Program-made: the position numbers and the translations under genes
In this document: positions 1 to 60,332 of the stretch, piece by piece
Layout of the letters: the number at the start of each line of letters is the position of its first letter
How positions within the stretch are numbered: position 1 is the first letter of the stretch
The notes under the pieces: model-generated
Told to the model about the DNA's origin: nothing
Seen by the model: only the letters and a program-made list of their open reading frames with translations
Databases searched by the model: none
NCBI GenBank assembly: GCA_024704765.1
Contig: JAKMXF010000255.1
Coordinates: 554,806 to 618,805 of the forward strand
Source: Oopsacas minuta
Lineage: Eukaryota; Animalia; Porifera
Direction of reading: 5' to 3'
Length of the DNA stretch: 64,000 nucleotides

Positions 1-2287
1 TTCTAAATTTCATTTTCAATAATTTATAGACCCACCCAAAGGCGCCCACTTATACTTTTCTTGACATTAAGTGAATTGGGCACACCCATTCGGACGAAAT
101 TTATTTTTAGAAATTTTATTTTCGTTATAACATTTTATTATTTCTGTATTTCTAATTCATTAGTATCACTTTATGAAGTATCCAATGCATCAATGAATTC
201 AGTATACGCATTGTTATTTAAGTTTATCAATAAATAGGGCTGGCTGGCATAAAACACTCACAAATTTAGAACTCATTTATTCTCGAACCATAATTATTAA
301 TTATATCAAAATACCACAAATTACGTCATAGTCCCATTTCCAGAAGTGCAACTAAAAATCTGGTGCCATTTTTGAAATCTACAGTGTCGATTTTCATTTA
401 CTATACATGACAATATTTTAACAAATATCTTCAGTGTAAGTATCTATCACCCTATAATCGCCATTTTGTCACACTGTGTATATTATTGATAGGGAGTTCA
501 ACTTCTTAAGTTCGAATTGCAAATATATTTCTAATTTAGAAATTTAGCTTCTAAGAACGACCATTTTTATAAGTGGCCCGAAGGCTATAGCCTACTTAGC
601 CTAATGGTAAATCCGGCACTGTGTCCTGTAGGTAGTTGATTACGATAGCTAAAACTTTTACCTCTCCTTGATATATATTGTGTCGTCATCTGCATAGCTA
701 GTAAGAGCGTTGTATTTGAGGGTAACTTCTTCAATGTTGATACAGGAGAGTATGGTCGCATGGGTTGGATTGGGAAATATCTACCCACCCCCCATCAAGT
801 TAATGCAAAATCAGTAGGTCGACAGCAATAGGTCATCGGGGGTACTTAGGTCACTCGAGTAGCCTTCTTGGCTTTGCGAACAATGCGAAACTTATAGAGA
901 ATCAACACATACTTTTGAGTAGCAATACATTGAACCGAGTGGGTCAACCTTAGTAATATCGAATATATTACATCCCCATGGGTAATGGGCTTAATCCAAC
1001 CGCCCAATTTATTTCTTAGTGATCGTGGATGCAAAAGAATTTTCGGGAAAATATATATTGGCACTCACCTTTTCATTGAGTCAGCATCATTTCACTAAAT
1101 ACTGGATACGTCACTGGAACAGACTAGTAGTGCTATTCGGGGTCTGTTTGCTTAATTATATGTCGGAACCTAATTCCTAGACAGGTTTTGAATTATACCC
1201 CTGATATTTGAAATATAATTAATTATTCCATGGATGTTTGTATATGTCTAAAAACCTCAGAAATGGATTGTACGTAACCTTATTACTCATGGCAAGATGC
1301 TGTAACCGTCTCTAATTTATCTTACTTCAGAGCGTGATTGATAATTATTCGCGAAAATAGTTCAATATTTCACTGAGAAAATGCTCCAAACGACAAATTA
1401 TATAATATATACCAATTACTCGTTTACAAGAAAATTGAGCTTTTATGCTGGAATATGCAGAATAATATGATCCAAGAATTCAATACACGAACACTTGAAA
1501 CTGGATTTTTGTGACCATTCCTTTCAGATAAGAATAGTTTGAATGTACGTATAGTTAGTAGAGACTAAAAACCACTCCAACCGAGTATATTGAGTCAAGG
1601 GCACATGGTATCCAAACTGCATTTGTCTGGAGCCTACAGAGATGCCAACTCACGGGTTATCCGTGGGTCTCAAGGATTTTCGTTGCTAAGCCTCTAACAG
1701 TCTAACTGTAATAGTTCACGGTTTTGTGGCTGATTTATTGGCAGTATATTTTGATGCAGAGAATTCAAATCTTACGGGTTGGTGAGACTCTAGGTCAGGT
1801 GGCATGTATGAAACTATCCCCAAACGCAATTTGAAGACGAATTCCATCAGGAGTACTAGACTAGCCTCAATAGAAGAATATTTGGACAATCAAATGCCAA
1901 TACTGAAATATTAGGGAAATATATTTAATCGTAGCTATGATTTAGTTAACTGAATTGTAAACTATTAAGTTAATATTGGTAGGCAGAAAAGCAACAAAGC
2001 AAATCAATCTGATTTTTGATATTCTAGTTTTTCCTATGAGCTGGTGTGCATTAAACTATACCACTCAGTCATAAAGCGTTTGTTTAATTTAGATACATAT
2101 AGGGGCGATTATTCGAGAGGGCATGAATTTGAGAAGTATTCGAAGTAATACGGCTGATGGCTTCGAGGTATTGTACGGCATAAATGAATAAATAAGAGAC
2201 AATAAATATAATATATATAAAGTGATAAAGTAGGTTGCAAAACTAAAACAATAAACAATAAATAGTTAAGCTAAGAGGTAAGGGAGA

Positions 2288-2347
2288 CCTATAAGTAAAC
2301 ATAGAATTATCGAGATGCCTATAACTAAACCTAGAATTATCGAAATC
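2288..2347. repeat. 30-bp tandem duplication just 3' of metallopeptidase copy 1
   Basis: cctataagtaaacatagaattatcgagatg is followed directly by cctataactaaacctagaattatcgaaatc. Confidence 0.8.
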
Positions 2348-2370
2348 GAAATATGGTGTTTAGTTTTGCA

Positions 2371-4941
2371 TCAAGGACAAAAGCTTTCCTCTACAATCCA
2401 AGGAAGATTGTACTCATTCAACAAATCAGTGGACATAGTCTTTTGATCATCATCCAGAGGACAAACAACTATACTCACCATATCTGAGAAATCGACTGCA
2501 TCAAGAGTTCCCAAACGGTTGTAATTGACTTCAAGCAGTAGTTTGTTGGGATCTGTTAGAGATTGACACATCATTGCACCCAAACCTATATCGTTATCCA
2601 GCTTAAATGCTGCGCTAGCAATAAGATTTTCTGATATATCTCCTGAAGAATGATCATTTAAAGCAGTGGTACCAAGGTAATTTGCATTTAGGTTGGAAAG
2701 GTCCTGACACCAACCATCACAATACATCAAGTTTCCGAGAACCTTTTGTCCCAGATATGTTGCATAACCTTCAGAGAATGCGAAATTTGGAGTGATAGGA
2801 GAACCATCATGTGGTCCACCCCCTGTTATTACTGCTCCTGTACGGGCGTTAATCAGATGTCCGAATTCATGCAATAACACAGAGTCATCGAATTCGTCTG
2901 GGTCGGTGACATGACCGCCTATGGATATCACTCCTCCACCGAAGTATGACACGGGATAATTGGTACCTTTTGCATACTTTCCATTTTCCCAGTCTGCCTT
3001 ACGTGGATAATCTGTAACCTCTCCACCATACGAGAGGTAGATAGGAAGCATACGAGTTAAGGTAACCATGATATGGAAAGCTCCAGAACTATCAGCTGTA
3101 GTAATAGTAACATCTCTGTTTGCAGTATCTTCCGCACTTGGAATTATTCCTGCTGTAACACGATACACGTGTATATTTACATCTGAATGATCTGTCACTT
3201 CTATCATATTATTTGAGGATAGGAATTCTACATAGACTGTAGAGTCTACATCTTGAGGTTGATATGAAAGAGAGTATACACCTCTTCGTGAATCAGATAC
3301 ATCACGCTCTACCTGAGATGTTCCATATACATTTCCTGCATCATCTACAACTCTGACTATACTACCTAATGGATTGAACCTTGACATGGTGGTCATGTAG
3401 CTCACTGTACCCTTAGCTAAGAATTCATGGCAGTTGACATTTACGACTAATACCTCTCTTCCTGCTCCTGCACCTCCTCCATCTGCTTCATTTGGCAAGA
3501 AAGATCCTTCTACCATTTCTTTTACGTCACAACCTTCTACCAAAATATCAAAATTTATTGTTTCATTGATGGAACACGCTGACCACAAATCCACACGTAT
3601 TGTGTACTGTCCTGAGATTGCTAATTCGTAGTATACATTTTCTGTCTTGATACGATCAATGTTACAACCTGCATTAGAATCAAGATCTAGAAACCCTTCT
3701 TGTGCGGATGAGATTCTGCTAGCATAATATATTTCTTCATTATTCGGATCAACAACATGAAGATCCATATCTACTTCTTTATCCCAAGTTAATCTCACGT
3801 GTAAAGTCCCAGTTTGTGAAGTAGATGTAATAATTGGAATCATTATTACTTCTCCTAATTCTCCTACTATATCCCTAAGGCGAATTAGCATGTCAGTAAC
3901 ATCTCCAGATTCTATGGAACCACTTGGAAGAGTGACCATGAAATTAAGTTGTATTGTCCCATTGTTTGCTTGACGAACTGATCTTCGTGAGGTAGAGGAT
4001 TGAAGAGATGATATAGGAATAATGAAATGCTGACCAAAACCCTCAAATCCCACTAGAATTTCAATTGCTGTAGAATCTTCACTAATTTCAAGAGGAACTT
4101 CTACACTTTGACCTGTAGTTATGGAAACCTCAAAGCTAGGAGGAAGGGTCACATTCAGTGTACCGTTTGTCGTATTGCTAGCTTCAGTTAATGGAAAGCT
4201 TTTCATATCAATAATGCCCTCAGCTATTGTGAATGGATTAGTTACTCCCAACTGGAAGAATATTTCAATCCCAGGAACCATTAGAGTGCGCTGATCAATG
4301 CTATATATTACTAATGGAATTGTATGGAACCTTTCTATTGCAACTATATTTGAAGGAATGGTTATCGTCCCTATCAGAATACTTCCGTTCTGTATTATTG
4401 TGGAATTCATTATTGTAGGTTGTCCGAATATAGAAGTATAGTTCGCTACAAAATGAGACGGATCTCCTGAAACCTCAGCTGTAATGGTTATTTGCATACC
4501 AGGATAGATTTGCAAGGGATAATCAATGGAAATTAGCATCAAACTAGGATCTTGAACAAGGATGATAATTTCACCTACACCATTACTGTTGGTGGTTGAT
4601 TGAGCTTCAACAGTTACAATATGGGTTCCGTCCTCTAAGCCTTGTGTTGGTATTTGTAGGTTAGTGGGAAAGAACTTATATGAGTACCTCTGTACTCCAT
4701 TCAAATACACGAGTACATTTCCCCGTGTGAATATGCCAGTTGGTAAGGATAGTTCTAGTTCAATATAACCGTTGGAGAATGCTTGGTCTGGAGGTAGAGG
4801 GCTATTGATATTGATAGCAAAAGTGCTAGCAGGTCTGAAGATAAACCACGCACCAACTGCGATAGCTACTCCTACAAGCAGTCCAATTACTATTATAGCG
4901 AAACACAGGAACAAAATGAGAATCTTCGTTTTTGTTTCCAT
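2371..4941 (-). CDS. 856-aa intronless type II membrane-anchored zinc metallopeptidase-like protein, copy 1 (TM anchor, Ig-like stalk, YfaP/DUF2135-like domain, gluzincin-like HExxH domain)
   Basis: Hydrophobic N-terminus ILILFLCFAIIVIGLLVGVAIAVGAWFIF. Beta-rich stalk. LTWDKEVDMDLHVVDPNNEEIYY...LDLDSNAGC..D....EN resembles YfaP/DUF2135-type bacterial domains. DPDEFDDSVLLHEFGH (2857-2871) is followed by FSEG, a candidate third zinc ligand. Confidence 0.85.
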   Translation of the reverse strand: METKTKILILFLCFAIIVIGLLVGVAIAVGAWFIFRPASTFAININSPLPPDQAFSNGYIELELSLPTGIFTRGNVLVYLNGVQRYSYKFFPTNLQIPTQGLEDGTHIVTVEAQSTTNSNGVGEIIILVQDPSLMLISIDYPLQIYPGMQITITAEVSGDPSHFVANYTSIFGQPTIMNSTIIQNGSILIGTITIPSNIVAIERFHTIPLVIYSIDQRTLMVPGIEIFFQLGVTNPFTIAEGIIDMKSFPLTEASNTTNGTLNVTLPPSFEVSITTGQSVEVPLEISEDSTAIEILVGFEGFGQHFIIPISSLQSSTSRRSVRQANNGTIQLNFMVTLPSGSIESGDVTDMLIRLRDIVGELGEVIMIPIITSTSQTGTLHVRLTWDKEVDMDLHVVDPNNEEIYYASRISSAQEGFLDLDSNAGCNIDRIKTENVYYELAISGQYTIRVDLWSACSINETINFDILVEGCDVKEMVEGSFLPNEADGGGAGAGREVLVVNVNCHEFLAKGTVSYMTTMSRFNPLGSIVRVVDDAGNVYGTSQVERDVSDSRRGVYSLSYQPQDVDSTVYVEFLSSNNMIEVTDHSDVNIHVYRVTAGIIPSAEDTANRDVTITTADSSGAFHIMVTLTRMLPIYLSYGGEVTDYPRKADWENGKYAKGTNYPVSYFGGGVISIGGHVTDPDEFDDSVLLHEFGHLINARTGAVITGGGPHDGSPITPNFAFSEGYATYLGQKVLGNLMYCDGWCQDLSNLNANYLGTTALNDHSSGDISENLIASAAFKLDNDIGLGAMMCQSLTDPNKLLLEVNYNRLGTLDAVDFSDMVSIVVCPLDDDQKTMSTDLLNEYNLPWIVEESFCP

Positions 4942-5577
4942 AATATGAGATCTCTGATCTGTACAATCGTAAGATTACTATAACTAATAAACAAAGGACA
5001 TGTCTAATTCCCAGGACGTGACAAAACATCATGCGACTATCCGGAAAATTCTGACACCTCGACTACGAGATGAACTCGTAAATATATGTGGGTAGGTAAT
5101 TTCTTGGACAAGAACTTTCCGGGACGGTTATGTCAATTCTCGGGAAATAGACTACATGTGTCATAAAAGGATACTCGTAAATCGAATCAAGATTTCCCAG
5201 TTATTTTATTGCAATGCTTACGCTCCACGCTACGGCGGTTTTAGCTACGTACCCATAGAAAAATTGGTAAGTAATTGATAAGTGAATTGATAAGTATATA
5301 AGAATCAAGATGTTATATATATATATATACATTTGACCACACATTGTGTTAAATAACAAAGTCTAGTATTAGTTCCAGGCATAACTACGTGTATGTGAGG
5401 CTTATTCGCCAATAAAATTCTTCTAGACTATGAATAAACGGAAGTCCATTTATTAGATAACGAGCCTTTGGCTCGTCGTTTCGCGATGAACTCGGCGCAT
5501 TGCACCTCGAGGTATCCATTATTCTCAAATTGACGACCCCTTTGAGTATTATAATTTCGATATAAGTAGAACATTTG

Positions 5578-5578
<1 letters not shown>

Positions 5579-5626
<48 letters not shown>
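5579..5626 (+). repeat. (GTT)n microsatellite, about 16 units
   Basis: Directly visible perfect trinucleotide run. Confidence 0.98.
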
Positions 5627-5919
5627 AGTGTTGGCGGTGGCGCCGCCGCTGGTATTATTGCCGCCTCAACATATATTTTGAGATTTGGCCAAATTTGTTT
5701 ACTTTATATACATAAAAACAACAATAAATTTACATAAGAGATCTTGAAAATGCGAAATTCTAGTTCAAGGTACTGTGGTACCCTTGGGTAGCCGTTTTGA
5801 GCAAGCCTGTCTGTTATTTTGAGATTTGGATAATTTGTTTACAATAAGTCAAAGACTCAAAGTTAATTTATATTATAGTGTATTCTGAATGTTATACAGA
5901 AAATCTAAGTATTAAATTT

Positions 5920-6130
5920 GAATTGTTGTTTGTCTGTTTGTTTGTTTTTGTTTGTCCTTTTTCAAGGAAAAGATTTACGGCATGCAATTTGAATTTGTCT
6001 CACAATTATGGCATTTACCATGTTTATCAAAGGAAGTAAATAGAATTCAATAAATCTTCATTGAATATATACAACTTGCTAAATGCAATTTTCACTCTTT
6101 TGGATTAATCTTATGTAAATTTACAATACA
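5920..6130 (+). repeat. Dispersed repeat family A copy ((GTTT)n-headed, Helentron/DINE-1-like)
   Basis: ttgtttgtctgtttg...tcaaggaaaagatttacggcatgcaattt...tttatcaaaggaagtaaatagaattcaataaa matches 13050-13250 and 43385-43560. Confidence 0.8.
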
Positions 6131-6302
6131 ATTACATCATCTCCCATGTCCCGTATAATACTATGAGCAAGCTTTGCTTGCGACGTAAGGCAATCGGAAT
6201 GATATCTTCACAAAAATTCTATTGTGTTTCAATAGTATTATCGATATTGGTAATTCTTGCATACATGTTTAATCATTGAAATTCTATCACATATTTGAAA
6301 TA

Positions 6303-8940
6303 ATGCCAAATAGATGTTGTTCAGCACCTGGGTACAGGACCTTAAAAATATACATGCGTGTCTGAAACACTTCCATGTTGAAGTTGTGGAAACGTGCTTT
6401 TCTATTCCTCAACCCGATGGAACCAAGTTAGAAGTTAATCGTACCATGTCTAGACTTCACCGAGATGCTGTTCCTAAGCTCCTACCAGGTTGTCCGAGTT
6501 ATCGCTCTATTTTAACTAAGCCACAAACTCGTTTAGATCTTTCTACTAAAGAACGGGATCAGTTGAATGTTGCGATCACTTAGAGCTTGAAACAACAACT
6601 AATAGATAAAAAGATGTTTAAACTTTAAAGTATCTACATTCTGTGAGTTGAATTCAAAAGTGAATAGTTTAACTCTCTCTCAGGGGAGTGTATAATCATA
6701 ATTATAATCATACACGATGCGACCAAACTGTTCCGTTTGGCAATTTTGAAATCTCAAATCGGTGGACGGTGTTTATAAGATAACAAGTTCACTGCAATAC
6801 AATTTATACTTTGATAATTGGAAAACATCTTACGTCATGGGTGCTCAAACTTTTATATCTACGGTCCACTTTACAAATTAGGCTCCCCCTATGGGCCACA
6901 AATCATAGATCGTCTCTGGCTTTAGTTTAATCAATTTTAAAGCTATATTATTGACATCATATTGCATTAACAATGGATTCTACTTGTAAATTCAGGTTAT
7001 TGACTTAAATTATGATCTTATAAATGGATTCGAATCATTTGATGTCTCTCTTGAATTCAACTTGTTTTCTAGCAAGTGGACAATAGTACTAAACGATTGA
7101 AGTACGTCAATCTACTGTATATGTATGAATAATGAAAACAAGCGAATTATCCGCGGGCGAGAGCGAATGGTCTCGCGGGAAACATGTGGACACCGTTTGA
7201 GCACCCTTGTCTTACGTCATAAGAACCATCACAGCTACAATATTACAACTATCATAGTAGTGCTGAAGTATCAACTTATTTCCCCAGCATTTTATCATTA
7301 TCTACAACCATTGGCTTGGAAATTGAATTTCGTATTTTATAAACTGATCTACTGTTATTCTTGATTTCAATGTTGTACATAATCTGAAGACTATACGTAA
7401 TACCTGGTTGAATCATAAAGATTGCAGGGCAAGCTTTAGTTAGCCTAACTTTGAAGATATCCGAATTTTATATGAAGCTGATCAACACTCAATAGTTAAG
7501 TTAGCTCCTCGGTTAACAGCCAAATCATGCTGGCCTTCCAACTTGGAACGTCAGAATGTAATTTTTGGCATTGAAAGTTTTTGAGGATTCTACCCATTCT
7601 GCACTCAAGGTTCAGTATCTTACATCTCCTAACCACCATTCTTGTCATCACACAAGCGAATTCATTCGTGTGATTTGTGACATCTGGAAGATGTTTATAT
7701 TAATACTCCATCCAAAGCTATTGGATTAAATAATGAAGCGTGCCGTCCATTTGTCCAAACGATTCCAGATTCAGTTATCTATCACGAGTTGTTGTTTGGC
7801 TTGAAAGATGGCAAGAGTTACCTCGCAATACTGGGAAACTTACTACTGAGACTTTTAAAGCTTTCACAAGTTTAGCGTTAACTTCAATATTAAACCATGG
7901 CGTAGCCAGGGGGTGGCTTTGTAGGCTAAAGCCACACCGAAAATTCTGATGTTAACATACTATGGAAGAATTGTTAATTACTACTATTACTGAAACACAT
8001 TAAGAATTAACAAATATATTACTATTTTACGTCGTAGGTATTAGTACATTTCTATATCAAATTGTTTGAATGAAACAGTTGTCAATGAAAAGCTTTTGGG
8101 GGCACAGCTAGCTCATTAGTTGTTAATTCTACTCAGGGTCGTTATGAAGATGGCAATATTAGTTCCAGTGACTTTGATACGAATCTAGACCCCATACATA
8201 ACGACTTACAATTTCCAACTCAGATTATTATTGTCAAATTAATCGTTTTCTAATAATTTAGATATCCGTCTAAACGAAAAATGATTCTTTAGTTATTACA
8301 TTTTAAAACTCAGCCACACCAAATAATTAGCCCTAGCTACGCCACTGAAACCATCTTACACAGAACTGTAACTATTCATATTTACTCGCTTCTTTTTGTA
8401 AATGATCCCTGGAGAATCATTTTAGAATTTCAGAATGATGGCTGGTGCTCAATATCATATTACCTTCTGTCAGATCCTCGAAAGCGAGCGGCGCTTAAAG
8501 TTATTTAGTGTTATCCTAAAAGTTGGTGCAATGCATCATTTATCTCTTAAAGAATTTATTGATTCCTTTTCAACTTCAACAGAACTTGCTAATACTCTTA
8601 ACACGGAACATTTTCTATCATCTAGGTGCTAGAATATTCTGTAATTAAAGTTCCACTTCAACTCAACCAACACTTGTGTTTATAGCTGGATATACAGTTT
8701 ATGGTTACTTCAAGAATTCTACCTGTTGTCAATATTGTTTATCTTTCCCTACAGGAAACAAAGAAGTGGAAATAGAAGCATCACCAGAATCAATCTACAA
8801 GCTGTTACAAGTTATGGATCGTAGTGCATTGAAATGGCCATCTGGTATTGTTATCAATGTCCTAGTTTGCTTGCGGAAAATTTTCACTTCGATGGAACAA
8901 CAGGATTTATGGAATGTTGTATTGAATTATGATATCTCAC
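6303..8940 (+). mobile_element. Decayed P-element/THAP9-like DNA transposon (transposase pseudogene)
   Basis: MPNRCCSAPG(Y)R at 6303 and C-x-x-HF...LHRDAVP are THAP-domain pieces, with a deletion and frameshift between them. Other fragments: LAPRLTAKSCWPSNLERQNV (~7500), PNDSRFSYL..VVWLERW, LTTETFKAF, and DP(L)E..F.EFRMMAGAQYHITFCQILESERRLK (~8400-8510). Many stops and frameshifts. Confidence 0.8.
7899..8347. mobile_element. hAT-like MITE inserted into the P-element transposase
   Basis: TIRs ggcgtagccaggg and ccctagctacgcc(actg), flanked by the direct repeat aaaccat on both sides. Removing the element rejoins ...SILNH to LTQNCNYSYLL. Confidence 0.8.
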
Positions 8941-8942
8941 TA

Positions 8943-9231
8943 CAGTGTACCCTCGATTATCCGACACCTGGAAGAGGATTTAGTTTGTGAAATTGTTCAA
9001 ATTTCATGTCTAAAGGGAGCTATAGCATACTTTAGCACTAGGTTTTCGGATGATGTTGCATTTACGCCCATATTGGTATAAATATACTGTCAAATATTCA
9101 AATTACAAAATCTTCATTTTCATATATACCCAAACAGTGAATTTCATATAGGAAAATACACTATTTCAGTTATCCGAACAGCAAACTTGAAAGTGTATGA
9201 CGAAGGTGTTCCGATAACCGAGGGTGTACTG
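8943..9231. mobile_element. Tc1/pogo-type MITE with TA target duplication
   Basis: ta|cagtgtaccctcgattatccga ... tccgataaccgagggtgtactg|ta. Confidence 0.75.
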
Positions 9232-9880
9232 TACTAAAGTGTTGCATATGCTATACCTATCGACTAGCAATCATTCTTTGCCTGTGTTCACTATCTTGAC
9301 AACCCAACTATTTGTCCCCTATTATACATAATCATGTTTTATCCCTCAATTACCATGTCTAACCGTGGAAACGAAATCTATAGCATCATTTTGAATTATT
9401 AGCCAAAACGTGCGAAAATATGATTTATCATATAATACATTATTATATCTACATATGAGACACCTCAACAACTAATAGAATTCCAGGATACATTCAATAT
9501 AAACGCATTACAGTGACAATGTAATTACACATCCTGTAGAACTAATAGAAATGGCGTGAATAGTACATCGTGAAAAACGTCCAATCTAATTGGCCTTAAT
9601 TTAGCCGCCAAAAAGGTGTGAAAACAATCACTTAACAAAGTTCATACCCGAGGTGCACATATACACCCAAAATGTACTCACGTGCCAATTTTCATGTAAA
9701 TGGGTCTGTTAGATTTCGCAAGACGGACGAACGTCATACATCGTCCATGCCAATAGGGCACAAAAAATATAGAATTGTACGTTCAAATATAGATAAAAAT
9801 CTGTCGAGGGAGTCCGAGAGGACTATTGTCCTGGGGCCAGATTATACCCGGGGTTAAACTGGGTGGGGAGGTTAATATAA

Positions 9881-9966
9881 GCTGTTACACCGGCACACGT
9901 GATAAGATTTCATTGAGTCGGGGTGCTGACTCATTGAAATAATATCATGAGTACCGGTGTAACAGC
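9881..9966. repeat. Imperfect 86-bp palindrome
   Basis: gctgttacaccgg...ttcattgagtc / gactcattgaa...ccggtgtaacagc. Confidence 0.75.
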
Positions 9967-10149
9967 ATCGACTTCTTAATATGAAAACGAATATAAATTA
10001 TTTTTGTATTTTCAAGACTCAGGAAAATGAAAATATACACACGCCTCACAGCAAAGAGTAGATAGAAATAACACACGATAGAAATGAGTAAATACCCTAA
10101 CAAGTAACTAAGATAGAATACATGAGTTATTACAGAATGAGTATATAAA

Positions 10150-12737
10150 TCAAGCACAAAAGCCTGCCTCTACAATCCAAGGAAGATTGTACTCATTCAA
10201 CAAATCAGTGGACATAGTCTTTTGATCATCATCCAGAGGACAAACAACTATACTCACCATATCTGAGAAATCGACTGCGTCAAGAGTTCCCAAACGGTTG
10301 TAATTGACTTCAAGCAGTAGTTTGTTGGGATCTGTTAGAGATTGACACATCATTGCACCCAAACCTATATCGTTATCCAGCTTAAATGCTGCGCTAGCAA
10401 TAAGATTTTCTGATATATCTCCTGAAGAATGATCATTTAAAGCAGTGGTACCAAGGTAATTTGCATTTAGGTTGGAAAGGTCCTGACACCAACCATCACA
10501 ATACATCAAGTTTCCGAGAACCTTTTGTCCCAGATATGTTGCATAACCTTCAGAGAATGCGAAATTTGGAGTGATAGGAGAACCATCATGTGGTCCACCC
10601 CTGTTATTACTGCTCCTGTACGGGCGTTAATCAGATGTCCGAATTCATGCAATAACACAGAGTCATCGAATTCGTCTGGGTCGGTGACATGACCGCCTAT
10701 GGATATCACTCCTCCACTGAAGTATGACACGGGATAATTGGTACCTTTTGCATACTTTCCATTTTCCCAGTCTGCCTTACGTGGATAATCTGTAACCTCT
10801 CCACCATACGAGAGGTAGATAGGAAGCATACGAGTTAAGGTAACCATGATATGGAAAGCTCCAGAACCATCAGCTGTAGTAATAGTAACATCTCTGTTTG
10901 CAGTATCTTCCGCACTTGGAATTATTCCTGCTGTAACACGATACACGTGTATATTTACATCTGAATGATCTGTCACTTCTATCATATTATTTGAGGATAG
11001 GAATTCTACATAGACTGTAGAGTCTACATCTTGAGGTTGATATGAAAGAGAGTATACACCTCTTCGTGAATCAGATACATCACGCTCTACCTGAGATGTT
11101 CCATATACATTTCCTGCATCATCTACAACTCTGACTATACTACCTAATGGATTGAACCTTGACATGGTGGTCATGTAACTCACTGTACCCTTAGCTAAGA
11201 ATCCATTGCAGGTGACATTTACGACTAATACCTCTCTTCCTGCTCCTGCACCTCCTCCATTTGCTTCACTTGGCAAGAATGATCCTTCTACCATTTGGTT
11301 TACGCCACAACCTTCTACCAAAACATCAAAATTTATTGTTTCAGTGATGGAACACGCTGACCACAAATCCACACGTATTATGTACTGTCCTGAGATTGCT
11401 AATTCGTAGTATACATTTTCTGTCTTGATACGATCAATGTTACAACCGGCATTAGAATCAAGATCTAGAAACCCTTCTTGTGCGGATGAGCTTAGATCAC
11501 CGAAATATATTTCTTCATTATTCGGATCGACAACATGAAGATCCATATCTACTTCCTGATCCCAAGTTAATCTAATGTGAAAAGTTCCCATTTCTGATTT
11601 CGAAGTAATAGTTGTGATCGTCTGAACTGGTCCTAATTCCCCTACCATATTTCTCAGACGGATCAACATTTCTATTTGTTCACCATTGCTAACAGATCCA
11701 GTAGGGAGAGTGACCATAAATGATAATGTTTGGGTACTAGCAGGATTTGCTTGACGAATTGATCTACGTCTTTGTGTATTTTGTAGAGAAGATATAGGAA
11801 TAATGAAATGCTGACCAAAACCCTCAAATCCCACTAGAATTTCAATTGCTGTAGAATCTTCACTAATTTCAAGAGGAACTTCTACACTTTGACCTGTAGT
11901 TATGGAAACCTCAAAACTAGGAGGAAGGGTCGCATCTAGTGTACCGTTTGTCGTATTGCTAGCTTCAGTTAATGGAAAGCTTTCCATATCAATAATGCCC
12001 TCAGCTATTGTGAATGGATTAGTTACTCCCAACTGGAAGAATATTTCAATCCCAGGAACCATTAGAGTGCGCTGATCAATGCTATATATTACTAATGGAA
12101 TTGTATGGAACCTTTCTACTGCAACTATATTTGAAGGAATGGTTATCGTCCCTATCAGAATACTTCCGTTCTGTATTATTGTGGAAGTCATTATTGTAGG
12201 TTGTCCGAATATAGAAGTATAGTTCGCTACAAAATGAGACGGATCTCCTGAAACCTCAGCTGTAATGGTTATTTGCATACCAGGATAGATTTGCAAGGGA
12301 TAATCAATGGAAATTAGCATCAAACTAGGATCTTGAACAAGGATGGTAATTTCACCTACACCATTACTGTTGGTGGTTGATTTAGCTTCAACAGTTACAA
12401 TATGGGTTCCGTCCTCTAAGCCTTGTGTTGGTATTTGTAGGTTAGTGGGAAAGAACTTATATGAGTACTTCTGTACTCCATTCAAATACACGAGTACATT
12501 TCCCCGTGTGAATATGCCAGTTGGTAAGGATAGTTCTAGTTCAATGAAACCGTTGGAAAATGCTTCATCTGATGGTATAGTGCTGTCTATGGAGATGATG
12601 AAATTCGATTGTTGACTTGTGGATAACTGGCGCGTTCCAAACCATACGCCAATGCCTATAGTTGCTACTAGGAGTAATCCAATGACTAGGAATACCAGAC
12701 AAAGTAAGAATATCAGGACTGTCTTCTTTGGATCCAT
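10150..12737 (-). pseudogene. Metallopeptidase copy 2 (paralog of 2371-4941), split by a 1-nt deletion; pseudogene or assembly error
   Basis: ORFs 10506-12737 and 10150-10509 together match copy 1 end to end. The C run at 10598-10601 has 4 C against 5 C at 2819-2823 in copy 1. Confidence 0.8.
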
Positions 12738-13049
12738 TGAATTTTGGTAAGCGTTCTTTATTTCTGATTACTGTTGCAATTCGTATTCAGGAGCTAAAAG
12801 ATACATACATTATCAAGACTCATATATCTTTAGTGGAATTCTCTTTGTTAAGAACGATTGGTATTGGTTCATATATATTTCTACTATTCAATGTATCATA
12901 AATTTTTTCTACATATTGATAATTACTACTTGTAGTGTGGCTCAGTCCCATTAATTATTTTCTATCATAATCCAAAAGTGATCAAATACAATGCAACCTT
13001 GCACACTTTTCATCTTCCAATTTTTTCTTCACGAATCTATATTATTAAA

Positions 13050-13462
13050 CCACAATTGTTGTCCGTTTGTTTGTTTGTTTGTTTGTTTGTCTGTTGTCAA
13101 GGAAAGGATTTACGGTATGCAATTTTGAAATTGTCGCATAACTATGTATTTATCGTGTTTATCAAGGAAGTAAATAGAATTCAATAAAACTTCACTAAAT
13201 ATATCGAACATGCTGAATCCGATTTTCGCACTTTTGGGTTAATCATATGAAAATTTATTATTGCTTTTATGAATATAAAGTAAACAAATTTCAAAATTGT
13301 TGTAGAACCATGCTTTCAATGGTTATACTGAGGTAATAGTGTATGCTGAGTCCGAATATGGTATTGTAAACAACATCAAAATTATTAAATCTCAATTGTT
13401 GTTTGTCTGTTTATTTGTCCGTTGAATACCTCAAGGCGCAATGCGACGAGCCGAAGACTCCT
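13050..13462 (+). repeat. Dispersed repeat family A copy with (GTTT)n and GC-rich terminal motif
   Basis: Matches 5920-6130. The end motif tacctcaaggcgcaatgcgacgagccgaagactc resembles the reverse complement of 5461-5516. Confidence 0.8.
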
Positions 13463-14212
13463 AATGTATAAATTTGGAATCATGTTTTAATCGGTTCTCT
13501 CGGTATTTGGATGCTTCCATGCATACAATAATGTACTACAGTAAACTTCCACTCAGGAAACACTTTGCCCCTTAGAGTTTTGGATATGCCACTAAAGGCT
13601 GACTTCTTATAAAGGAACACCTTCATATTAATAACACTTTAGCATTCTCAAATGTGTTCCCTATTTGGATATTTCACGTACATGTTGTTGAAATAGAGAA
13701 CCTCCCTAGCCCACTACTTTTGTTATTGCTGATAATCAATGATCCTCAATCCGAATTATATTAATACAGTAAAATTATCTCAAGACCGAAGTACCTTTAC
13801 ATGATACAAGTTATTGCAGGCAACATGGCATATATTTTATGTGTTAAATGTTGTGAGAGCGATTGATAAGCTTAATGCTAGCACACATATATATAGATTA
13901 CAGTGGACAAACCAAATAATATACTTATACGTTCTGGAATTGTAGAGGGATTTTGGTATTATAGTGTAAATACAAATACGTAATATGGTACTTAGCATTC
14001 ATTAATTTATTATTCCTACCTCTCTTTGTAGTGTTCCACCAGAAATTGAAGAAGGATGAAGGAATGTTCAAGTTGATAATATTTTCTAGATTTATGTTCC
14101 TTTTATACTATTCGCATACTACGTATTGTATTTAATACTTGTAAGTGTGGGCTTGTCAGGAGCATTATGCCATAGTGATTTTCTTATCTAGCATCATACA
14201 TCATACATTCAG

Positions 14213-15002
14213 GCATAGACTAGTATATCATACAGATAGGAAAGTAGTCGAGCAACGAATAAAATAGCGAGGCCATTTATATAAATCTCATAAAAGTTAA
14301 ATTAACCCTTCAAAATTTGTGAATTGGACTTTGTTGGGGTTAGAAAATGTGAAGAATCAGTTAAGACTACCTAAAAAGTTCAAACTGCTATTCTTCATCT
14401 CGTTTAGGCGCATTCAAATCACGACATCAAAATTCACACAAAAGCTCATCAAAAATAGAATTTGTTTACTTTTTGAAATTCTTGCATTTTGATGAATTAA
14501 TATTTATTCATATGGTATAAATAACTTGCGCGTTTTTCTTTAGAATAGAATTCGGATCACATCATCATATCATATTTTTGAAAATTCATAATCTATTTTG
14601 ATAAATATGTATTTTTTCATGTCTATGGTATAATTCAGAAATTTTTCTTCCAATAAGCTAGTTTTAAAGCATGGATCTAACTTGAGTGTGAAGTACATAT
14701 ATGAATTCAAACAATATTATCTTAAAGTTAAATAAAATGCATTTTTTACAAAAATATTTGAGAAAATAGGCAAATAATATAATGCTAACGTCATTGCATA
14801 AATGGCGCCTAAACGAGATGAAGAATGGCAGTTTGAACTTTTTAGGTAGTCTTAACTGATTCTTCACATTTTCTAACCCTAAAAAGTCCAATTTCCAAAT
14901 TTTGAAGGGTTAATTTAACTTTTATGAGATTTATATAAATGGCCTCTCTATTTTATTCGTTACTCAGCTACTTTCCTATCTGTATGATATAGTAGTATAT
15001 GG
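14213..15002. mobile_element. Non-autonomous element with ~200-bp terminal inverted repeats (family B)
   Basis: 14213-14410 is the reverse complement of ~14800-15002 (tatcatacagataggaaagtag...ttcttcatctcgtttaggcgc). Confidence 0.85.
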
Positions 15003-15604
15003 CTCAGGTTAGTAACGGTTTAAGTAATAGCTGACACCGTTTATGATTGAAAGCAGAAATTTGTCAATGTGTTCATTGTGACCTGTAGATTAGACACAAT
15101 AGACACAATTTGCGTGACTTCATAAACCACATAAAATTTGAAACGCGAATAACTCAATAACGATAACAGCTAGAGTAATATTTCAATTGGTGTAGTATAG
15201 ATTAGGATGGACACATTGGCCACCATAACTATCAAGTCACCGTAGTGGAGGTGGTGATGAAAAAGCAAAATTTTCAAAAAGTGAGATTTCGAAATATTTG
15301 ACAGAACTTCAATGTTTGGAAACATTCACAAAAATTTGTAAACATTTGCTTAGTCAGCATAACGTCACGTAATAGTTGAATGCTTTTAACTCCATTTTTA
15401 TATGAGACAGAATAATACTTACAACTGATGAAATGCAGTAGATGCCAAATGGGATACATTTCCCATGATAATAATGACGTCACAATAGTAGAGTAATGAC
15501 GACATACCAAAATTGTAATTTTTGAGATTTCGAAAATTTTACAATATTGTGATATTTTTATTCTATTTTATAGTAACCTGTGAGCGTAGCGGGCAAAATT
15601 ATAT

Positions 15605-15752
15605 AATTACAACCTGTGCCCACAGCTTAGCCTATTGATTAAATTTGTTTAAAGTGGCATTAGTAATTGGAAGTACACATAGTGCCTCCAATTACTATTG
15701 CCACTTAAACAAATTTAATCAATAGACTAAGCTGTCGGCACAGGTTGTAATT
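15605..15752. repeat. Near-perfect 148-bp hairpin
   Basis: Arms of ~69 bp (aattacaacctgtgcccacagcttagcctattgattaaatttgtttaaagtggcattagtaattggaag and its reverse complement) with ~5 differences and a ~10-nt loop. Confidence 0.9.
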
Positions 15753-15959
15753 TTTGGTTTTTGGAAACTTTTGGCCAAGAAAGGGAATCTCGTTATAGGG
15801 CTACAACATCGATAAATTAGTGTATATACTATTGTGTAGAATGTTTTTCAATTATACAATATTATAATCAAATCAAATTAATTCAATCATTTGAAAATAC
15901 TTTGACAATCCACAAGTCTGGAATGTTACTAGCATCCTTACGTATTCAGCGTACTTACT

Positions 15960-16110
15960 TACCCCTGGATAGCTGTTTAGAGCAAGCCTATTCATATAAA
16001 CAGCAATATATTTACATATCAACGGACAAACAAAAAGATAAACAACAATTGAGAATTAATAATATAGGTGTTGTTTACAATACCATATTCGGACTCAGCA
16101 TACTGACTAG
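15960..16110 (-). repeat. Dispersed repeat family A fragment, reverse orientation
   Basis: caacggacaaacaaaaagataaacaacaattgaga...tgtttacaataccatattcggactcagcatact is the reverse complement of 13340-13425. Confidence 0.75.
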
Positions 16111-16380
16111 ATTATAACACCTAATCTACTGGTTTACCTAGTAAATTTGATACTAGGTGATTATCATTTCACATCAAGACTTAAATACTCGATACTAGAT
16201 AAAACACCTATTAAGTGTCAACTACACAGTAAGTAAGGAGCTTTAACTCGTAAAATAGAGGTTAGCACCTAGTACTAGATTTGATCCCTATAATACTAGG
16301 TTTTGATACCACTCCCATACTAACATAGTATTTAGGTATTCTTTGAGAAATAACTAAAATTTTCCTTCTAATGTAGTAGC

Positions 16381-16770
16381 TATAATTTATCTGGATTATC
16401 AAAGGTGTATTTTACAACAGACTTGTCATAAAGATGATGATAACCACTTGTGCTTAGTAGAATTCATAAATTGGATACTTTATAATATAATACTAATAAG
16501 CTCCACACAATGGGTTATAATTTATCTGGATTATCAAAGGTGTATTTTACAACAAACTTGTCATAAAGATGATGATAACCACTTGTGCTTAGTAGAATTC
16601 ATAAAATTGGATACTTTATAATATAATACTAATAAGCTCCACATAATGGGTTATAATTTATCTGGATAATCAAAAGTGTATTTTACAACAAACTTGTCAT
16701 AAAGATGATGATAACCACTTGTGCTTAGTAGAATTCATAAAATTGGATACTTTATAATATAATACTAATA
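16381..16770 (+). repeat. Tandem repeat, 135-136-bp unit, about 2.9 copies
   Basis: The unit tataatttatctggattatcaaaggtgtattttacaac...gtgcttagtagaattcataaa...tactaataagctccac starts at 16381, 16516 and 16652. Confidence 0.95.
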
Positions 16771-16984
16771 CTTTCTTACCACAATATGACAAAACTATTA
16801 GTGTTAAAATTTAATTCTATTATTTACCAAAATTATACGACTATGCTGTGCATAACTATTGTAATTTGATAAAGGGAGCCCACCGATACGAGCTGCCCCG
16901 GAGCCTTTTGATTCTATCGGCCGCCCTAGTAGCGGTTGCCCCACTTAATTATTAAGAATATTACACCCTATTTTCTAGTTATAG

Positions 16985-17914
<930 letters not shown>

Positions 17915-25222: not shown

Positions 25223-26497
25223 ATGGTTAATGTGGGTAGAGTAAAGCGTGTCTTCTTACTAGCTGTATTTCTTTTGGGAGGAATTATTTTGTTATTCTCT
25301 AATCATATGAATTATTTCAAATCTAAACACTCACAAACTAAATCACATATCATTGAGCCTATTAAAGAAGCAGTCTCCTTACCTGCCACTGAAGCAGTTG
25401 CAGCTGTCAATTCCATTACTGAATTAGCTGTCAAACCTGTCAGTTACAACACTCACATATTCTATTACTCCTGGTATGGAACACCTGAGACGGACGGCCA
25501 GTACTACCACTGGAACCACGTGTATATTCCTCACTGGAATAGCAAAATAGCTCATAAATTCCCTTCCAACACACGTCACGAACCTCCTGATGATATTGGA
25601 GCTAACTTCTACCCTTCTCTTGGCTGCTATAGCTCGTCTGATCCTCTGGTCATCAGCCAGCACATGTCAGATATACGTAATAGCGGTGTGGGTGTGTTAG
25701 CACTGTCCTGGTATCCTCCTGGAAATGCGGATGAGGAGGGGAGACCATCTGATAGCCTGGTACCACTACTACTCGATATAGCCAATAAATTCTCTATTAA
25801 AGTAACATTTCATATTGAACCATATAAGGAGCGTACAGCTGTATCAGTGAGAAGTGATATTGAGTATATTATGGGAACATATTCAAAGCATCCTGCATTC
25901 TACAGATATCATGAACACACCACGCCTCCTACAGAGAAACCTTTATTCTATATATACGACTCATATCACATATCATCCGGGGACTGGGCACAGGTGTTGA
26001 CACCTGCAGGACAACACACTATAAGAGGTACTGCACTAGATTGTATTGTAGTGGGATTAGTAGTTAATAAGAAGGATACAGATAGCATCAAGAGTTCAGG
26101 TTTTGATGGTTTCTACACATACTTTGCATCACGTGTATTCACGTATGGATCAGCGCCTAGCAATTGGAAGCAATTAAAGGAGGTAGCAACTGACTCTAAC
26201 TTGTTGTTTATCCCTAGTATAGGACCTGGATATATCGATACTGCAGTCAGACCATGGAATAGTGTTAACACTCAAGATAGGAGAAACGGAGCTTATTACT
26301 CGGAGAACTTTCTAGAAGCTATTAAATCTGGTGCTGATATTATTAGTATTACTTCTTATAATGAATGGCATGAAGGTACACAGATAGAACCTGCTATACA
26401 GAAGCTGAAGTACTTAGATTATCAACCAGAAGAACCAGATTTCTATATTCACAAGACTAAAGAACTTATCTCAATATACGAAAATAGTATCACCTGA
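25223..26497 (+). CDS. MANEA: Golgi glycoprotein endo-alpha-1,2-mannosidase (GH99), single exon
   Basis: Type II anchor, HIFYYSWYG, YYHWNH, DDIGANFYPSLGCYSS, FHIEPY, SIGPGYIDTAVRPWN, SITSYNEWHEGTQIEPA. Confidence 0.96.
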   Translation: MVNVGRVKRVFLLAVFLLGGIILLFSNHMNYFKSKHSQTKSHIIEPIKEAVSLPATEAVAAVNSITELAVKPVSYNTHIFYYSWYGTPETDGQYYHWNHVYIPHWNSKIAHKFPSNTRHEPPDDIGANFYPSLGCYSSSDPLVISQHMSDIRNSGVGVLALSWYPPGNADEEGRPSDSLVPLLLDIANKFSIKVTFHIEPYKERTAVSVRSDIEYIMGTYSKHPAFYRYHEHTTPPTEKPLFYIYDSYHISSGDWAQVLTPAGQHTIRGTALDCIVVGLVVNKKDTDSIKSSGFDGFYTYFASRVFTYGSAPSNWKQLKEVATDSNLLFIPSIGPGYIDTAVRPWNSVNTQDRRNGAYYSENFLEAIKSGADIISITSYNEWHEGTQIEPAIQKLKYLDYQPEEPDFYIHKTKELISIYENSIT

Positions 26498-31998: not shown

Positions 31999-32521
31999 TC
32001 AGCTAGTTAACTGAGAACTAATTAAATCAAATTAACATCTGTGTTGTACTTAAAATAATAATAATCTGATTATTTTATCATCATTATACACAATTATAAA
32101 GCCAATAATTACTTGGTAGCTCTTCTTTTCAACTCATAAACGGTGAATCCACCCTGAAATATATCCTCACCTTAATGAGATGGTTAATACATATTTAGTT
32201 GATTACTACTTTTGCTAATCAATTCTCAATCTTATAATATCGCCTGCTAATTATACACAAAATTAAATATTACATAACACCTACTAAGTAGAATACTTTC
32301 AGGTACCAATCTTGAAAATTATACCATATTTTCATCTCATTACGTATATCCAGGAAGTGTTATAGGTAATAGAATTAGAATTTGATAATACCTACATTTT
32401 CATTTCTAAACGAGCGGAATAATGCGCTCATATTACGTCACTCAATATTTATTTCTGTACCTGAATTACATACTTCTTTTCCTATTTCTATAGAATATAT
32501 CACTTCACTTTTCATTTGTTA
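31999..32521. promoter_or_regulatory. Probable bidirectional promoter between GINS3 and B3GAT
   Basis: Head-to-head start codons ~520 bp apart; CRE-like ttacgtca near 32434. Confidence 0.55.
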
Positions 32522-33445
32522 ATGGGATCTCGATATTTACGCATAACAACCTTATTAAAACTACTTGCATTTTGTCTTATTTTGGTCATAATAAACTTGT
32601 TCCTTACAATAAATCAATCTGATAGTATACATGTGTCAAGTTGTTCCTATTTGTCCTGCAAACTGTTGGAGAAGTCTAGTAATGTTCCTCTATACCTGAT
32701 AACTCCCACTTACACAAGACTAACGCAGAAAGCTGACTTGATCAGACTCTCCCACACACTCATGCATATTCATAATATTTTATGGATTGTAGTAGAGGAT
32801 CGTAGCAGTAAATCCAAATTAGTTACTAACCTACTGGATAGATCTGGTATAGAGCATGTTCATATGAATGTAGAGACGCCAAAGATATTCCGTCTGAGGC
32901 CCGGGGATAGGAAGTATATGCAGCACAGGGGCGTGGAGCAGAGGAACCTGGCCCTGGATTGGATTAGAATGAGCTATGAACTCTCTCAGGGGGTAGTGTA
33001 TTTCATGGACGATGATAATACTTATGATATTGAATTGTTTCATCATATAAGGAAGGTAAATAAGGTAGGAATCTGGCCTGTCGGTTTAAGCGGGGGTAAT
33101 GATTATGAAGGTCCTATTTGTGAGAACGGTAAGGTAACAGGATGGTACACAATATGGGATACGAGGAGAATGTTTCCAATAGATATGTCAGGATTCGCTA
33201 TACATCTACAAGTTTTGCTTGATTCTCCGTCTGTTTACTGGGATCGTAAATCTAGGGTTGGAAATCTGGAATCTGACTTACTGATTAGCTTAGGAATAGA
33301 GAGAGGAGATTTGGAGCCGATAGATGATACATGTAGCCAAGTGTTAGTGTGGCATACACAGACTGTTAAGTTTGAATATCTGGAAAATAGAATGGAAAGA
33401 ATAACGATAAAGAATTTGGAAAAGTACATGGACTTAGAAGTATAA
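32522..33445 (+). CDS. B3GAT3: Galactosylgalactosylxylosylprotein 3-beta-glucuronosyltransferase (GT43), single exon
   Basis: Type II anchor, ITPTYTRLTQKADL, QRNLALDWIR, GVVYFMDDDNTYD, WPVGLSGG, FPIDMSGFA, VLVWHTQT. Confidence 0.93.
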   Translation: MGSRYLRITTLLKLLAFCLILVIINLFLTINQSDSIHVSSCSYLSCKLLEKSSNVPLYLITPTYTRLTQKADLIRLSHTLMHIHNILWIVVEDRSSKSKLVTNLLDRSGIEHVHMNVETPKIFRLRPGDRKYMQHRGVEQRNLALDWIRMSYELSQGVVYFMDDDNTYDIELFHHIRKVNKVGIWPVGLSGGNDYEGPICENGKVTGWYTIWDTRRMFPIDMSGFAIHLQVLLDSPSVYWDRKSRVGNLESDLLISLGIERGDLEPIDDTCSQVLVWHTQTVKFEYLENRMERITIKNLEKYMDLEV

Positions 33446-59172: not shown

Positions 59173-60332
59173 ATGTCATCTTCACCAAGCAGTTTAGATG
59201 ATCCAGAACCGATTGTGATTGTTCTAGGTAGTTCAAATGTACAGATTGGCTTCGCTGGAAGTGATTCACCTCGTTTCGTGAATCCGAGTGTTGTTGGTAC
59301 AACTAAACGGACTGTAGGACCTTTGATCGAAGGAATGGACCCAGGGAGTAATTATTGTGGATACGATGCAATGCGTAGACTAGGAGTTCTAGATCCCAGT
59401 TATCTGATAGAGAGAGGAGCTGTAAAGGATTGGAATAAATTTGAACAATTAATGAATTATAGCTTCAAAATGCTCAGAATATCTCCAGAGGAATCCAGTG
59501 TGTTGATAACTGAATCACCTTTGAATCCACGAGAAAATCGTGAGAGACTTTGTCAGTTTTTCTTTGAAACATACAATGTTAGGCGATTTAGTGTAGAAAT
59601 AGATACAATACTCTCCATGTATTCATGTGGTGGTAGGGCTACAGGAGTGTCAGTGAGTTCAGAAGGAGGAGTTACCTCTGTCCTTCCTATCTATGAAGGT
59701 TATATTGTTCGAGTGCTGTAAAGAGATTGGATTTAGGAGGTATTGACGTCACTGAATATCTGACTAGACTTCTGACACAGGAAGGGCATTACTTCAGAAC
59801 ATCAGCTGAGAGGGAAATAGTACGGAGGCTGAAGGAATCTCTTGCTTACGTATCATACGATTTCAATCAAGAAATGGCTAAATACTGGACCTCATGGCGA
59901 CCAGAGATGGACAAATATTATGAGCTGCCAGACGGTCACATGATATTAGTTACTACTCAGCTATTTGAGTGTACAGAATGTCTCTTCCAGCCTTTAACAC
60001 ATCTGGGAAGAGATCACATAGGAATCCATCAGCTGATATACAACTGTATCAAAGATTGTCAAATTGATATTCGTAAAGATCTCTATTCTAATATTCTACT
60101 GTCTGGAGGTAATACATTGTTATCAGGGTTCCCAGAGAGATTACGAAAGGAAATAATGAACTTAGCTCCTCCCAAATCTACAGTTAAGATGTCCAGTCCT
60201 CCAGAGAGGAAGTACAGTACATGGATAGGAGGCTCTGTATTAGCTTCTCTGTCTAGTTTCTCTAATTGGGTAGATAAGTCGCAGTACGATTTAGTAGGAC
60301 CTAATATCATGTCAGGACGATCATTCTTATAA
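59173..60332 (+). CDS. Divergent actin-like / actin-related protein, intronless, with a 1-nt frameshift near 59710
   Basis: GFAG.D.PR...PSVVG, ITESPLNPRENRE, PIYEGY, SAEREIVR, YELPDG, DIRKDLYSNILLSGG, PPERKYSTWIGGS. Adding one base at gttc|gagt restores ...YIVPSAVKRLDLGG. Confidence 0.88.

Follow-up and report, generated by a model that had tools for sequence, protein, structure and literature searches.

A 64,000-nucleotide stretch of the genome of Oopsacas minuta, a glass sponge (Hexactinellida) (contig JAKMXF010000255.1 of assembly GCA_024704765.1, positions 554,806 to 618,805 of the forward strand; hereafter the window) carries two minus-strand open reading frames (ORFs), at 2371-4941 (856 aa; copy 1) and 10506-12737 (743 aa; copy 2, NCBI gene LOD99_3361). 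We regard these as very probably tandem paralogues of a family acquired by eukaryotes from bacteria, now a resident and expanded family of glass sponges, encoding a predicted surface metalloprotease. The donor was probably related to Myxococcota-type lipoprotein genes. Horizontal acquisition, domestication and duplication, proposed in an initial annotation made from the sequence of the window, are supported by phylogenetic trees, base composition, genomic context and paralogue counts.

Both ORFs open with Lys-rich residues, followed by a hydrophobic helix of ~27 residues and a long beta-rich region, and both contain the motif blocks RLTWD.EVDMDLHVVDPNNEEIY...LDLDSNAGC and DPDEFDDSVLLHEFGH. The initial annotation of two intronless genes with transmembrane (TM) anchors and shared motif blocks was borne out for both anchors and both ORFs, except that the assembled copy 2 has a frameshift and reads GGPHDGS...AFSEG...FCA in another frame. 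The layout of copy 1 was delineated from homologues, AlphaFold2 (AF2) models and a 25-sequence alignment of sponge and bacterial sequences (A3), as follows.

2371..4941, minus strand: copy 1, an intact 856-aa ORF (ORF list, homologues, and alleles in sequencing run X4)
4843..4923, minus strand: N-terminal signal anchor, residues 7-33, after Lys3 and Lys5 (hydropathy and AF2)
3997..4824, minus strand: immunoglobulin (Ig)-like beta-sandwich stalk, residues ~40-315, with six N-x-S/T sequons (AF2, Foldseek, colinearity)
3973..3987, minus strand: RRSVR, residues 319-323, candidate convertase or shedding site in a low-confidence linker
3433..3816, minus strand: YfaP-like Asp-rich beta domain, residues ~376-503 (LTWD..D.DLHV.DP..EEIY...LDLDSN.GC)
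2374..3429, minus strand: metallopeptidase module of thermolysin/mycolysin fold, residues 505-856 (AF2 model and fold matches)
2857..2871, minus strand: HEFGH (H691, E692, H695), predicted zinc-binding and catalytic motif, invariant in A3
2770..2811, minus strand: H711 (GGPHDG) to E724 (AFSEG), the Glu being the proposed third zinc ligand, invariant in A3

The full-length AF2 model (predicted local distance difference test, pLDDT, 74) comprises a helix at residues 3-34, beta-sandwich domains up to residue ~375, a beta domain at 378-503 and a mixed C-terminal part, in agreement with the beta-rich stalk initially placed after the anchor. In both ORFs the best 19-residue Kyte-Doolittle window of the anchor averages 3.3, and the anchor occupies the place of the lipoprotein signal (...L-x-A-C-G-G lipobox) in bacterial relatives. 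Foldseek matched the stalk to Ig arrays, and the stalk is colinear with Myxococcota proteins whose alignments start at residue 37 or 97. The linker at residues 316-326 was modelled with pLDDT <50. Its motif, RRS[TVI]R, is reflected in an RxxR pattern in 17 of 26 scanned sponge-type sequences and in a dibasic pair in 21 of the 26, and it is deleted in three; we consider it a candidate convertase or shedding site. Taken together, the predicted product would be a type II membrane glycoprotein with a short cytoplasmic N-terminus and one TM helix in place of the bacterial lipid anchor, its ectodomain running from three Ig-like stalk domains through the RRSxR linker and the YfaP-like domain to a distal, two-lobed zinc endopeptidase of thermolysin/mycolysin fold.

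Bacterial and eukaryotic relatives

A profile search of representative sequences returned 9,438 matches at E <=1e-3 and 376 at E <=1e-30, and a wide gap in identity separates sponge-type relatives from bacterial proteins. The former comprise ~30 proteins of equal length at 50-85% identity, identified by word-indexed search. Given these relatives and the thousands of bacterial homologues, the match of the motifs is far beyond chance. Among the full-length non-sponge matches listed, most are Ala-rich proteins with a lipoprotein signal (...ACGGG) at the start, and carriers named in a genome scan include Myxococcota, Nannocystaceae, Myxococcales, Acidobacteriota and Rugamonas. An ORF of Nannocystaceae (CAYOBQ010000003.1) aligns to sponge residues 37-855, and a protein from a Myxococcota metagenome-assembled genome (MAG; OZ223209.1) aligns to residues 97-855, with 32% identity over the C-terminal 567 residues up to the terminal ...LxW...FC. 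The motif combination had initially been recognised as bacterial, and this now extends beyond two motifs to the whole ectodomain, which is colinear from residue ~37 to the last Cys with bacterial lipoproteins, many of them from Myxococcota.

Both of these bacterial proteins and the AFDB cluster Q2I6L5 (‘Lipoprotein’) preserve this colinearity, which starts at the first Ig-like domain and extends as far as the C-terminal ...W...FC, and share with the sponge protein the YfaP-like domain, the HExxH...H...E module and a conserved Cys pattern. They differ from it in their low identity (22-32%), lipobox, high GC content and lack of the RRSxR linker motif, and some possess additional Cys-rich/EGF-like N-terminal parts. 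One bacterial relative resides in a dense bacterial neighbourhood with genes for a MacB-type ABC transporter, a TetR regulator and an oxidoreductase; in the surroundings of the bacterial homologues, no operon partner proved to be conserved. Of the named bacterial homologues, the closest (OZ223209.1, locus L050, 4477-8426) is split into overlapping ORFs at 4477-6756 and 6690-8426, probably through a frameshift in a long-read MAG. It also has an extra Cys-rich/EGF-like N-terminal part of ~470 residues and is followed by two Kelch-repeat proteins.

The Asp-rich beta domain had been assigned initially to a YfaP/DUF2135-like group, of which the YfaP portion holds. A 15-sequence profile of the domain matched the C-terminal domain (residues 130-241) of Escherichia coli YfaP (sequence from the K-12 genome NC_000913.3) with an hhalign probability of 97.9% (E 6.5e-13), and BLASTP gave E 2e-08. 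The Pfam DUF2135 model (PF09906, gathering threshold 22 bits) was not reached: neither the sponge protein nor the domain matched it at E <=1, and bacterial relatives score just 12-13 bits. The homology concerns the central domain, with a common W-D...D-L-D-L-H-V...P.G.E...G.L-D.D motif; E. coli YfaP is a protein of 258 aa without the peptidase module, whereas the sponge protein has 856 aa and several domains. As stated in the initial annotation, yfaP lies in an alpha-2-macroglobulin operon of E. coli, adjoining yfaQ and the alpha-2-macroglobulin-family gene yfaS. No such operon was seen in the three neighbourhoods of bacterial homologues that were read (L086, L050 and L005).

Within sponges, the family includes a third O. 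minuta gene (LOD99_7092) and a copy in the Vazella pourtalesii transcriptome (EukProt), the transcript identifier of which is absent from the supplements of PMC10772126. Many further members lie on contigs of up to 1.5 Mb in three ENA assemblies. Neighbours of these paralogues include split Ras exons and fn3, zf-C2H2, NHL and zf-TRAF genes, and from such neighbours we take the three assemblies to be eukaryote genomes. Several paralogues share one contig, so clustering is general in the family. The sponge copies (Oopsacas, Vazella and the three ENA assemblies) form one expanded clade. Some members deviate from the common design: P0023 reads LYLIAY at the HExxH site and AFPHG in place of AFSEG, and in P0017 and P0024 the N-terminus is short and hydrophobic and resembles a cleavable signal peptide, not an anchor. 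Features of P0023, P0024 and P0017 would thus point to catalytically dead and secreted variants in the family.

Two non-sponge sequences have eukaryote-like features. One, P0088, is a transcriptome sequence of the amoebozoan (archamoeba) Mastigella eilhardi (EukProt EP01105) with an ordinary signal peptide and many N-x-S/T sequons; the other, P0078, is a 2.9-kb transcript-like Logan contig (L085, from SRR12264491; gene 47-2815, GC 51-56%) encoding an ordinary signal peptide and a Cys-rich N-terminal region. No other eukaryote was found among the best 150 of the 9,438 matches, nor in two word-indexed searches covering both protein halves. Other sponges and animals were likewise not seen in those searches, which did not include direct tblastn of demosponge, calcarean or homoscleromorph genomes. 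At NCBI the family genes carry the product name ‘hypothetical protein’. In the sponge literature searched, no paper describes this protease family, and the O. minuta genome paper (PMC10280926) does not mention horizontal transfer.

Phylogeny and the route into eukaryotes

Trees were reconstructed on 486 shared profile positions, a quick one with 124 sequences and a careful one with 51 (LG+C20 PMSF), with the root assumed among bacteria. The sponge sequences formed one clade (100/100), whose sister was the long-branched pair of P0088 and P0078 (joint clade 99/94). This eukaryote-like clade was in turn sister to 18 bacterial rows, including two named Myxococcota, in a joint clade (100/99) apart from other bacterial rows, and the whole group was nested in a wider bacterial family. 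The check set out in the initial annotation therefore places the sponge clade inside bacterial diversity, with few non-sponge eukaryote sequences in the clade. From these results, transfer from bacteria is well supported.

Given that every distant homologue is bacterial, and that sponge assemblies often carry microbial contigs, the locus could represent genes of a sponge-associated bacterium joined to sponge DNA by the assembler. Several observations contradict this. Both protease genes have a GC content of 39% and a GC at third codon positions (GC3) of 29-30%, inside the range of neighbouring host genes, whereas bacterial homologues have a GC of 50-71% and a GC3 of 49-91%. The N-terminus bears a eukaryote-type signal anchor and no lipobox, animal genes lie in the window past copy 2, and the nearest bacterium shares <=32% identity. 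More than 25 paralogues or orthologues were identified on large eukaryote-like contigs of the three other assemblies, in addition to that in the Vazella transcriptome. Furthermore, the locus is represented in four sequencing runs of one sample (X1-X4; library types unrecorded), of which X1-X3 are DNA-like, with an even depth that rises 2-3x over shared blocks where the two copies collapse. Contigs of X1-X3 join copy-2-specific coding sequence (CDS), the start codon and upstream intergenic DNA, and overlapping pieces cover the downstream junction. The probability of a chimeric contig is, in our estimation, vanishingly small, and contamination is for practical purposes excluded. Oopsacas is not named in the main text of a preprint on contamination of sponge genomes.

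Vertical inheritance would require that the gene was present in the common ancestor of Amoebozoa and animals and disappeared from nearly all descendants, with glass sponges, Mastigella and a small number of further lineages retaining it. The single 99/94 clade of sponges, M. eilhardi and P0078 is what this history would produce, and the alternative placement, of sponges with bacteria without P0088 and P0078, was rejected at the borderline in an approximately unbiased (AU) test (p 0.047), for a group chosen after the tree had been seen. Dozens of independent losses would however be needed to account for the dearth of further eukaryotes among the matches, the eukaryote clade lies inside a large and diverse bacterial family, and attraction of the two long non-sponge branches (1.3-1.5) to the sponge stem is possible. 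We therefore consider vertical inheritance very improbable.

Acquisition from bacteria accordingly remains the preferred reading, although the same AU test also qualifies it: together with the long branches, its borderline outcome gives little guidance on how many transfers took place among eukaryotes, or in which direction. The identity of the donor lineage is likewise qualified, in that it is founded on two named Myxococcota sequences together with metagenome proteins.

To our knowledge, few transfers of bacterial genes into early-branching animals are well supported. The present family offers a clean and old transfer, expanded in the assemblies that carry it, as well as an example of a bacterial lipoprotein refitted for the eukaryotic secretory pathway, in which a predicted type II TM anchor takes the place of a lipid anchor and the N-terminal tether is kept.

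The predicted metallopeptidase module

As a fold search with the full-length model yielded only arrays of Ig domains, residues 505-856 were modelled separately, using 25 sponge and bacterial sequences. The resulting AF2 model is of high confidence (pLDDT 92; predicted TM-score, pTM, 0.92) and resembles thermolysin (VIA Z 18.7 over 250 residues, root-mean-square deviation 3.4), an M36 protease (Z 16.0) and LasB (Z 15.8). Foldseek recovered the M4 peptidases aureolysin and thermolysin (E 6e-07, probability 1.00), and the best Swiss-Prot fold match was mycolysin (M5, Streptomyces cacaoi P20910; E 3e-11, TM-score 0.59). In the Atlas, bacterial clusters matched at TM-scores of 0.75-0.80, some of them with Mycolysin_N and Mycolysin_M domains, and the largest cluster was mostly Myxococcota.

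Across A3, invariant residues comprise H691, E692, H695, H711, E724, D682, D685, W651, D817, D820, C827, W848 and C855, and the HEFGH motif is kept in 24 of 26 sponge-type sequences other than LOD99_3361. The HExxH motif, the invariant Glu downstream of it and the thermolysin/mycolysin fold are in keeping with the gluzincin chemistry proposed at the outset. By analogy with the gluzincin pattern, zinc would be held by H691, H695 and E724, with E692 activating water. E724 lies 29 residues past H695, compared with a spacing of ~20 residues between the second His and the Glu in thermolysin, and H711 is an alternative candidate for the third ligand. In the proposed mechanism, H711 would stand at the place of a transition-state-stabilising residue of thermolysin; no equivalent of thermolysin His231 was identified in the sponge module. 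Substrates would be extracellular or phagosome-lumen proteins, cleaved by an enzyme that is either tethered or shed at the dibasic linker, with possible roles in digesting bacterial prey, in defence or in the processing of matrix.

With respect to known families, the thermolysin-like M4 peptidases (thermolysin, aureolysin, LasB, ProA) and M36 fungalysin share the two-lobed fold and the HExxH with a downstream Glu, but are only ~10-14% identical to the sponge module. Membership of M4 proper was considered and rejected, as the Pfam models Peptidase_M4 and M4_C were unmatched, no FTP/PepSY propeptide was found and PDB sequence searches gave no match. Mycolysin-like Atlas clusters carrying Mycolysin_N/Mycolysin_M match at a TM-score of 0.75 over ~320 residues; the sponge protein differs from mycolysin in having Ig-like and YfaP-like domains upstream, and no sequence-level match between the two was obtained. 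Evidence for M5 membership is confined to the level of fold, hmmscan being empty with a local Pfam that may lack the recent Mycolysin_N and Mycolysin_M models. ADAM, MMP and astacin enzymes are likewise extracellular zinc endopeptidases of animals, some of them membrane-anchored and convertase-processed. A metzincin assignment was nevertheless rejected, in line with the initial exclusion of these three families: the sponge protein reads HEFGHLINARTG, so that the residues past HEFGH (LINARTG) supply no Gly or His as HExxHxxGxxH needs, its folds match M4, M5 and M36, its predicted anchor is type II and not type I, and its nearest relatives are bacterial.

Pfam and NCBIfam scans of whole proteins, separate domains and bacterial relatives returned nothing at curated thresholds, and sequence searches of the PDB with profiles A1 and A3 returned nothing relevant. 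These negative results temper the catalytic part of our reading: with no curated family model and no PDB sequence match, the term ‘protease’ is based on fold and motif. An M4-type propeptide (FTP/PepSY) was not detected in the sponge protein, and P0023 and P0024, on ENA contigs of 864 kb and 297 kb, respectively, lack HExxH, from which it follows that not every family member can be an enzyme.

The loss of HExxH in these two members, the long and Ig-rich ectodomain, and an expansion in clusters reminiscent of recognition gene families might instead describe adhesion or recognition molecules, built from an Ig stalk and a binding domain, in which the catalytic domain is a fossil. We judge this improbable, since H691, E692, H695, H711 and E724 are invariant in A3, the two members are the only exceptions among the 26 sequences scanned, and the old blocks of the two window copies show a dN/dS of 0.14-0.24. 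Returning to a catalytic interpretation, the module points to an uncharacterised bacterial peptidase family with thousands of members, combining the thermolysin/mycolysin fold with a YfaP-like domain, for which none of the tested Pfam or NCBIfam models reaches threshold.

Paralogue divergence, sequencing reads and genomic surroundings

Copy 2 has the same build as copy 1 and is interrupted at a single position:

10150..12737, minus strand: copy 2 (LOD99_3361), consisting of ORF 10506-12737 and a shifted continuation to 10150
10598..10601, minus strand: run of four G, the sole frame break of copy 2 (copy 1 has five G at ~2820-2825)

The frame shifts just after HEFGH, and the last 150-odd codons continue in another frame to a stop at 10150. 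This shifted part holds GGPHDGS...AFSEG and the C-terminal ...FCA, with no second defect. The NCBI model of LOD99_3361 (840 aa) spans the frameshift by an invented intron and thereby drops the region of the presumed third zinc ligand, an annotation that needs correction whether the G run is real or an error.

Comparison of the two copies revealed a mosaic of old and recent sequence. In copy-1 coordinates, they are 99-100% identical in blocks 4723-4003 and 3376-2386, and 84-98% identical between 3826 and 3376. Identity falls to ~50-60% for the N-terminal/TM part and the linker (4003-3826), and outside the CDS the copies are unrelated. Divergent blocks show a dS of 1.5-3.2 and the low dN/dS given above, versus a dS of 0.01-0.04 in near-identical blocks. 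This pattern agrees with an old duplication, after which purifying selection acted on both copies and gene conversion recently intervened; through this conversion, most of copy 2 appears to have been overwritten by copy-1-like sequence.

Around the G run, identity between the copies is 100% over ~120 bases to one side and ~320 to the other. Every X1-X3 contig has the extra base here (five G), but since the identical copies collapse in Logan contigs, these contigs cannot settle the state of copy 2, which has either a very recent frameshift or an assembly error in the homopolymer. Were the shift real, copy 2 might be dead and the locus would hold one functional gene and no functional pair. The 1-base deletion directly past HEFGH speaks for this, as does the depth of copy-2-specific contigs in the RNA-like run X4, >100x below that of copy-1-allele contigs. 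On the other hand, the post-shift frame is open to the normal stop without further defect, the break is a homopolymer length difference typical of long-read error, the old blocks bear signs of purifying selection, and the in-frame form in X1-X3 offers weak additional support for an intact gene. We place the loss of copy 2 not far short of an even chance.

Run X4 is RNA-like: over the shared CDS blocks most 200-base bins reach depths of ~46,000-96,000, compared with 19-66 for the majority of intergenic bins and none for the sequence directly upstream of copy 2. Contigs specific to copy 2 have a depth of 105-135, against ~17,000-40,000 at shared-block sites bearing the copy-1 letter only. Because the copy-1 letter was found at 12 of 12 diagnostic sites covered, copy 1 is strongly and copy 2 weakly represented in X4, and copy 1 looks abundantly expressed. 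The strength of this signal is lessened by the unrecorded library type of X4 and by contig depth being a poor measure of expression. Low-depth X4 contigs (19-40) in the spacer at 7668-9866 have the same borders as X1 contigs and represent either genomic background or low-level intergenic transcription.

Should the high expression of copy 1 be true, the enzyme would be a candidate in glass-sponge feeding, defence or matrix biology. One tentative scenario is a single entry of a bacterial gene into eukaryotes, followed by movement between them or by patchy survival in glass sponges, Mastigella and one other lineage; in glass sponges the product would rank among the most highly expressed surface enzymes of syncytial tissue, as a thermolysin-like protease, tethered or shed, that digests captured bacteria, such that a prey-killing tool of predatory Myxococcota would have been reused by a bacterivorous animal. 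As a whole, we consider this scenario doubtful. The apparent high expression of copy 1 also raised the question of a link to hexactinellid silica proteins. This was rejected, since the published descriptions of hexaxilin, perisilin and glassin are of different and much smaller proteins, with perisilin belonging to the CAP superfamily (PMC10772126).

The contig carrying the locus is 618 kb long, and the other large ORFs of the window are eukaryotic, including a RING finger protein, actin and the following single uninterrupted ORFs:

16988-17914: DIMT1
25223-26497: GH99 endomannosidase
32516-33445: GT43 glycosyltransferase
33534-35216: SET/TPR protein

As these four genes are single ORFs too, the intronless state of the protease genes is not diagnostic of foreign origin; the O. 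minuta genome has 1.59 introns per gene (PMC10280926). The actin gene (59173-60332) comprises two adjacent plus-strand ORFs matching Pfam actin positions 4-166 and 217-406, with ~50 residues absent between them, reflecting a short intron or a defect.

An Rfam scan of positions 1-17000 gave no match. In the 3' flank of copy 2, a hairpin at 9881-9966 consists of 39-nt arms with 85% complementarity and an 8-nt loop. The word depth of its bin (9800-9999) is ~30x that of the flanks in X1 and ~7-13x in X2 and X3, which suggests a high-copy element resembling miniature inverted-repeat transposable elements. Upstream of copy 2, at 13035-13423, lies a very high-copy repeat delimited by 49-nt direct repeats at a distance of 340 nt. 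Its depth is ~74,000 in one run and at least ~100,000 in the other three, and numerous joints and loose ends of contigs coincide with it.

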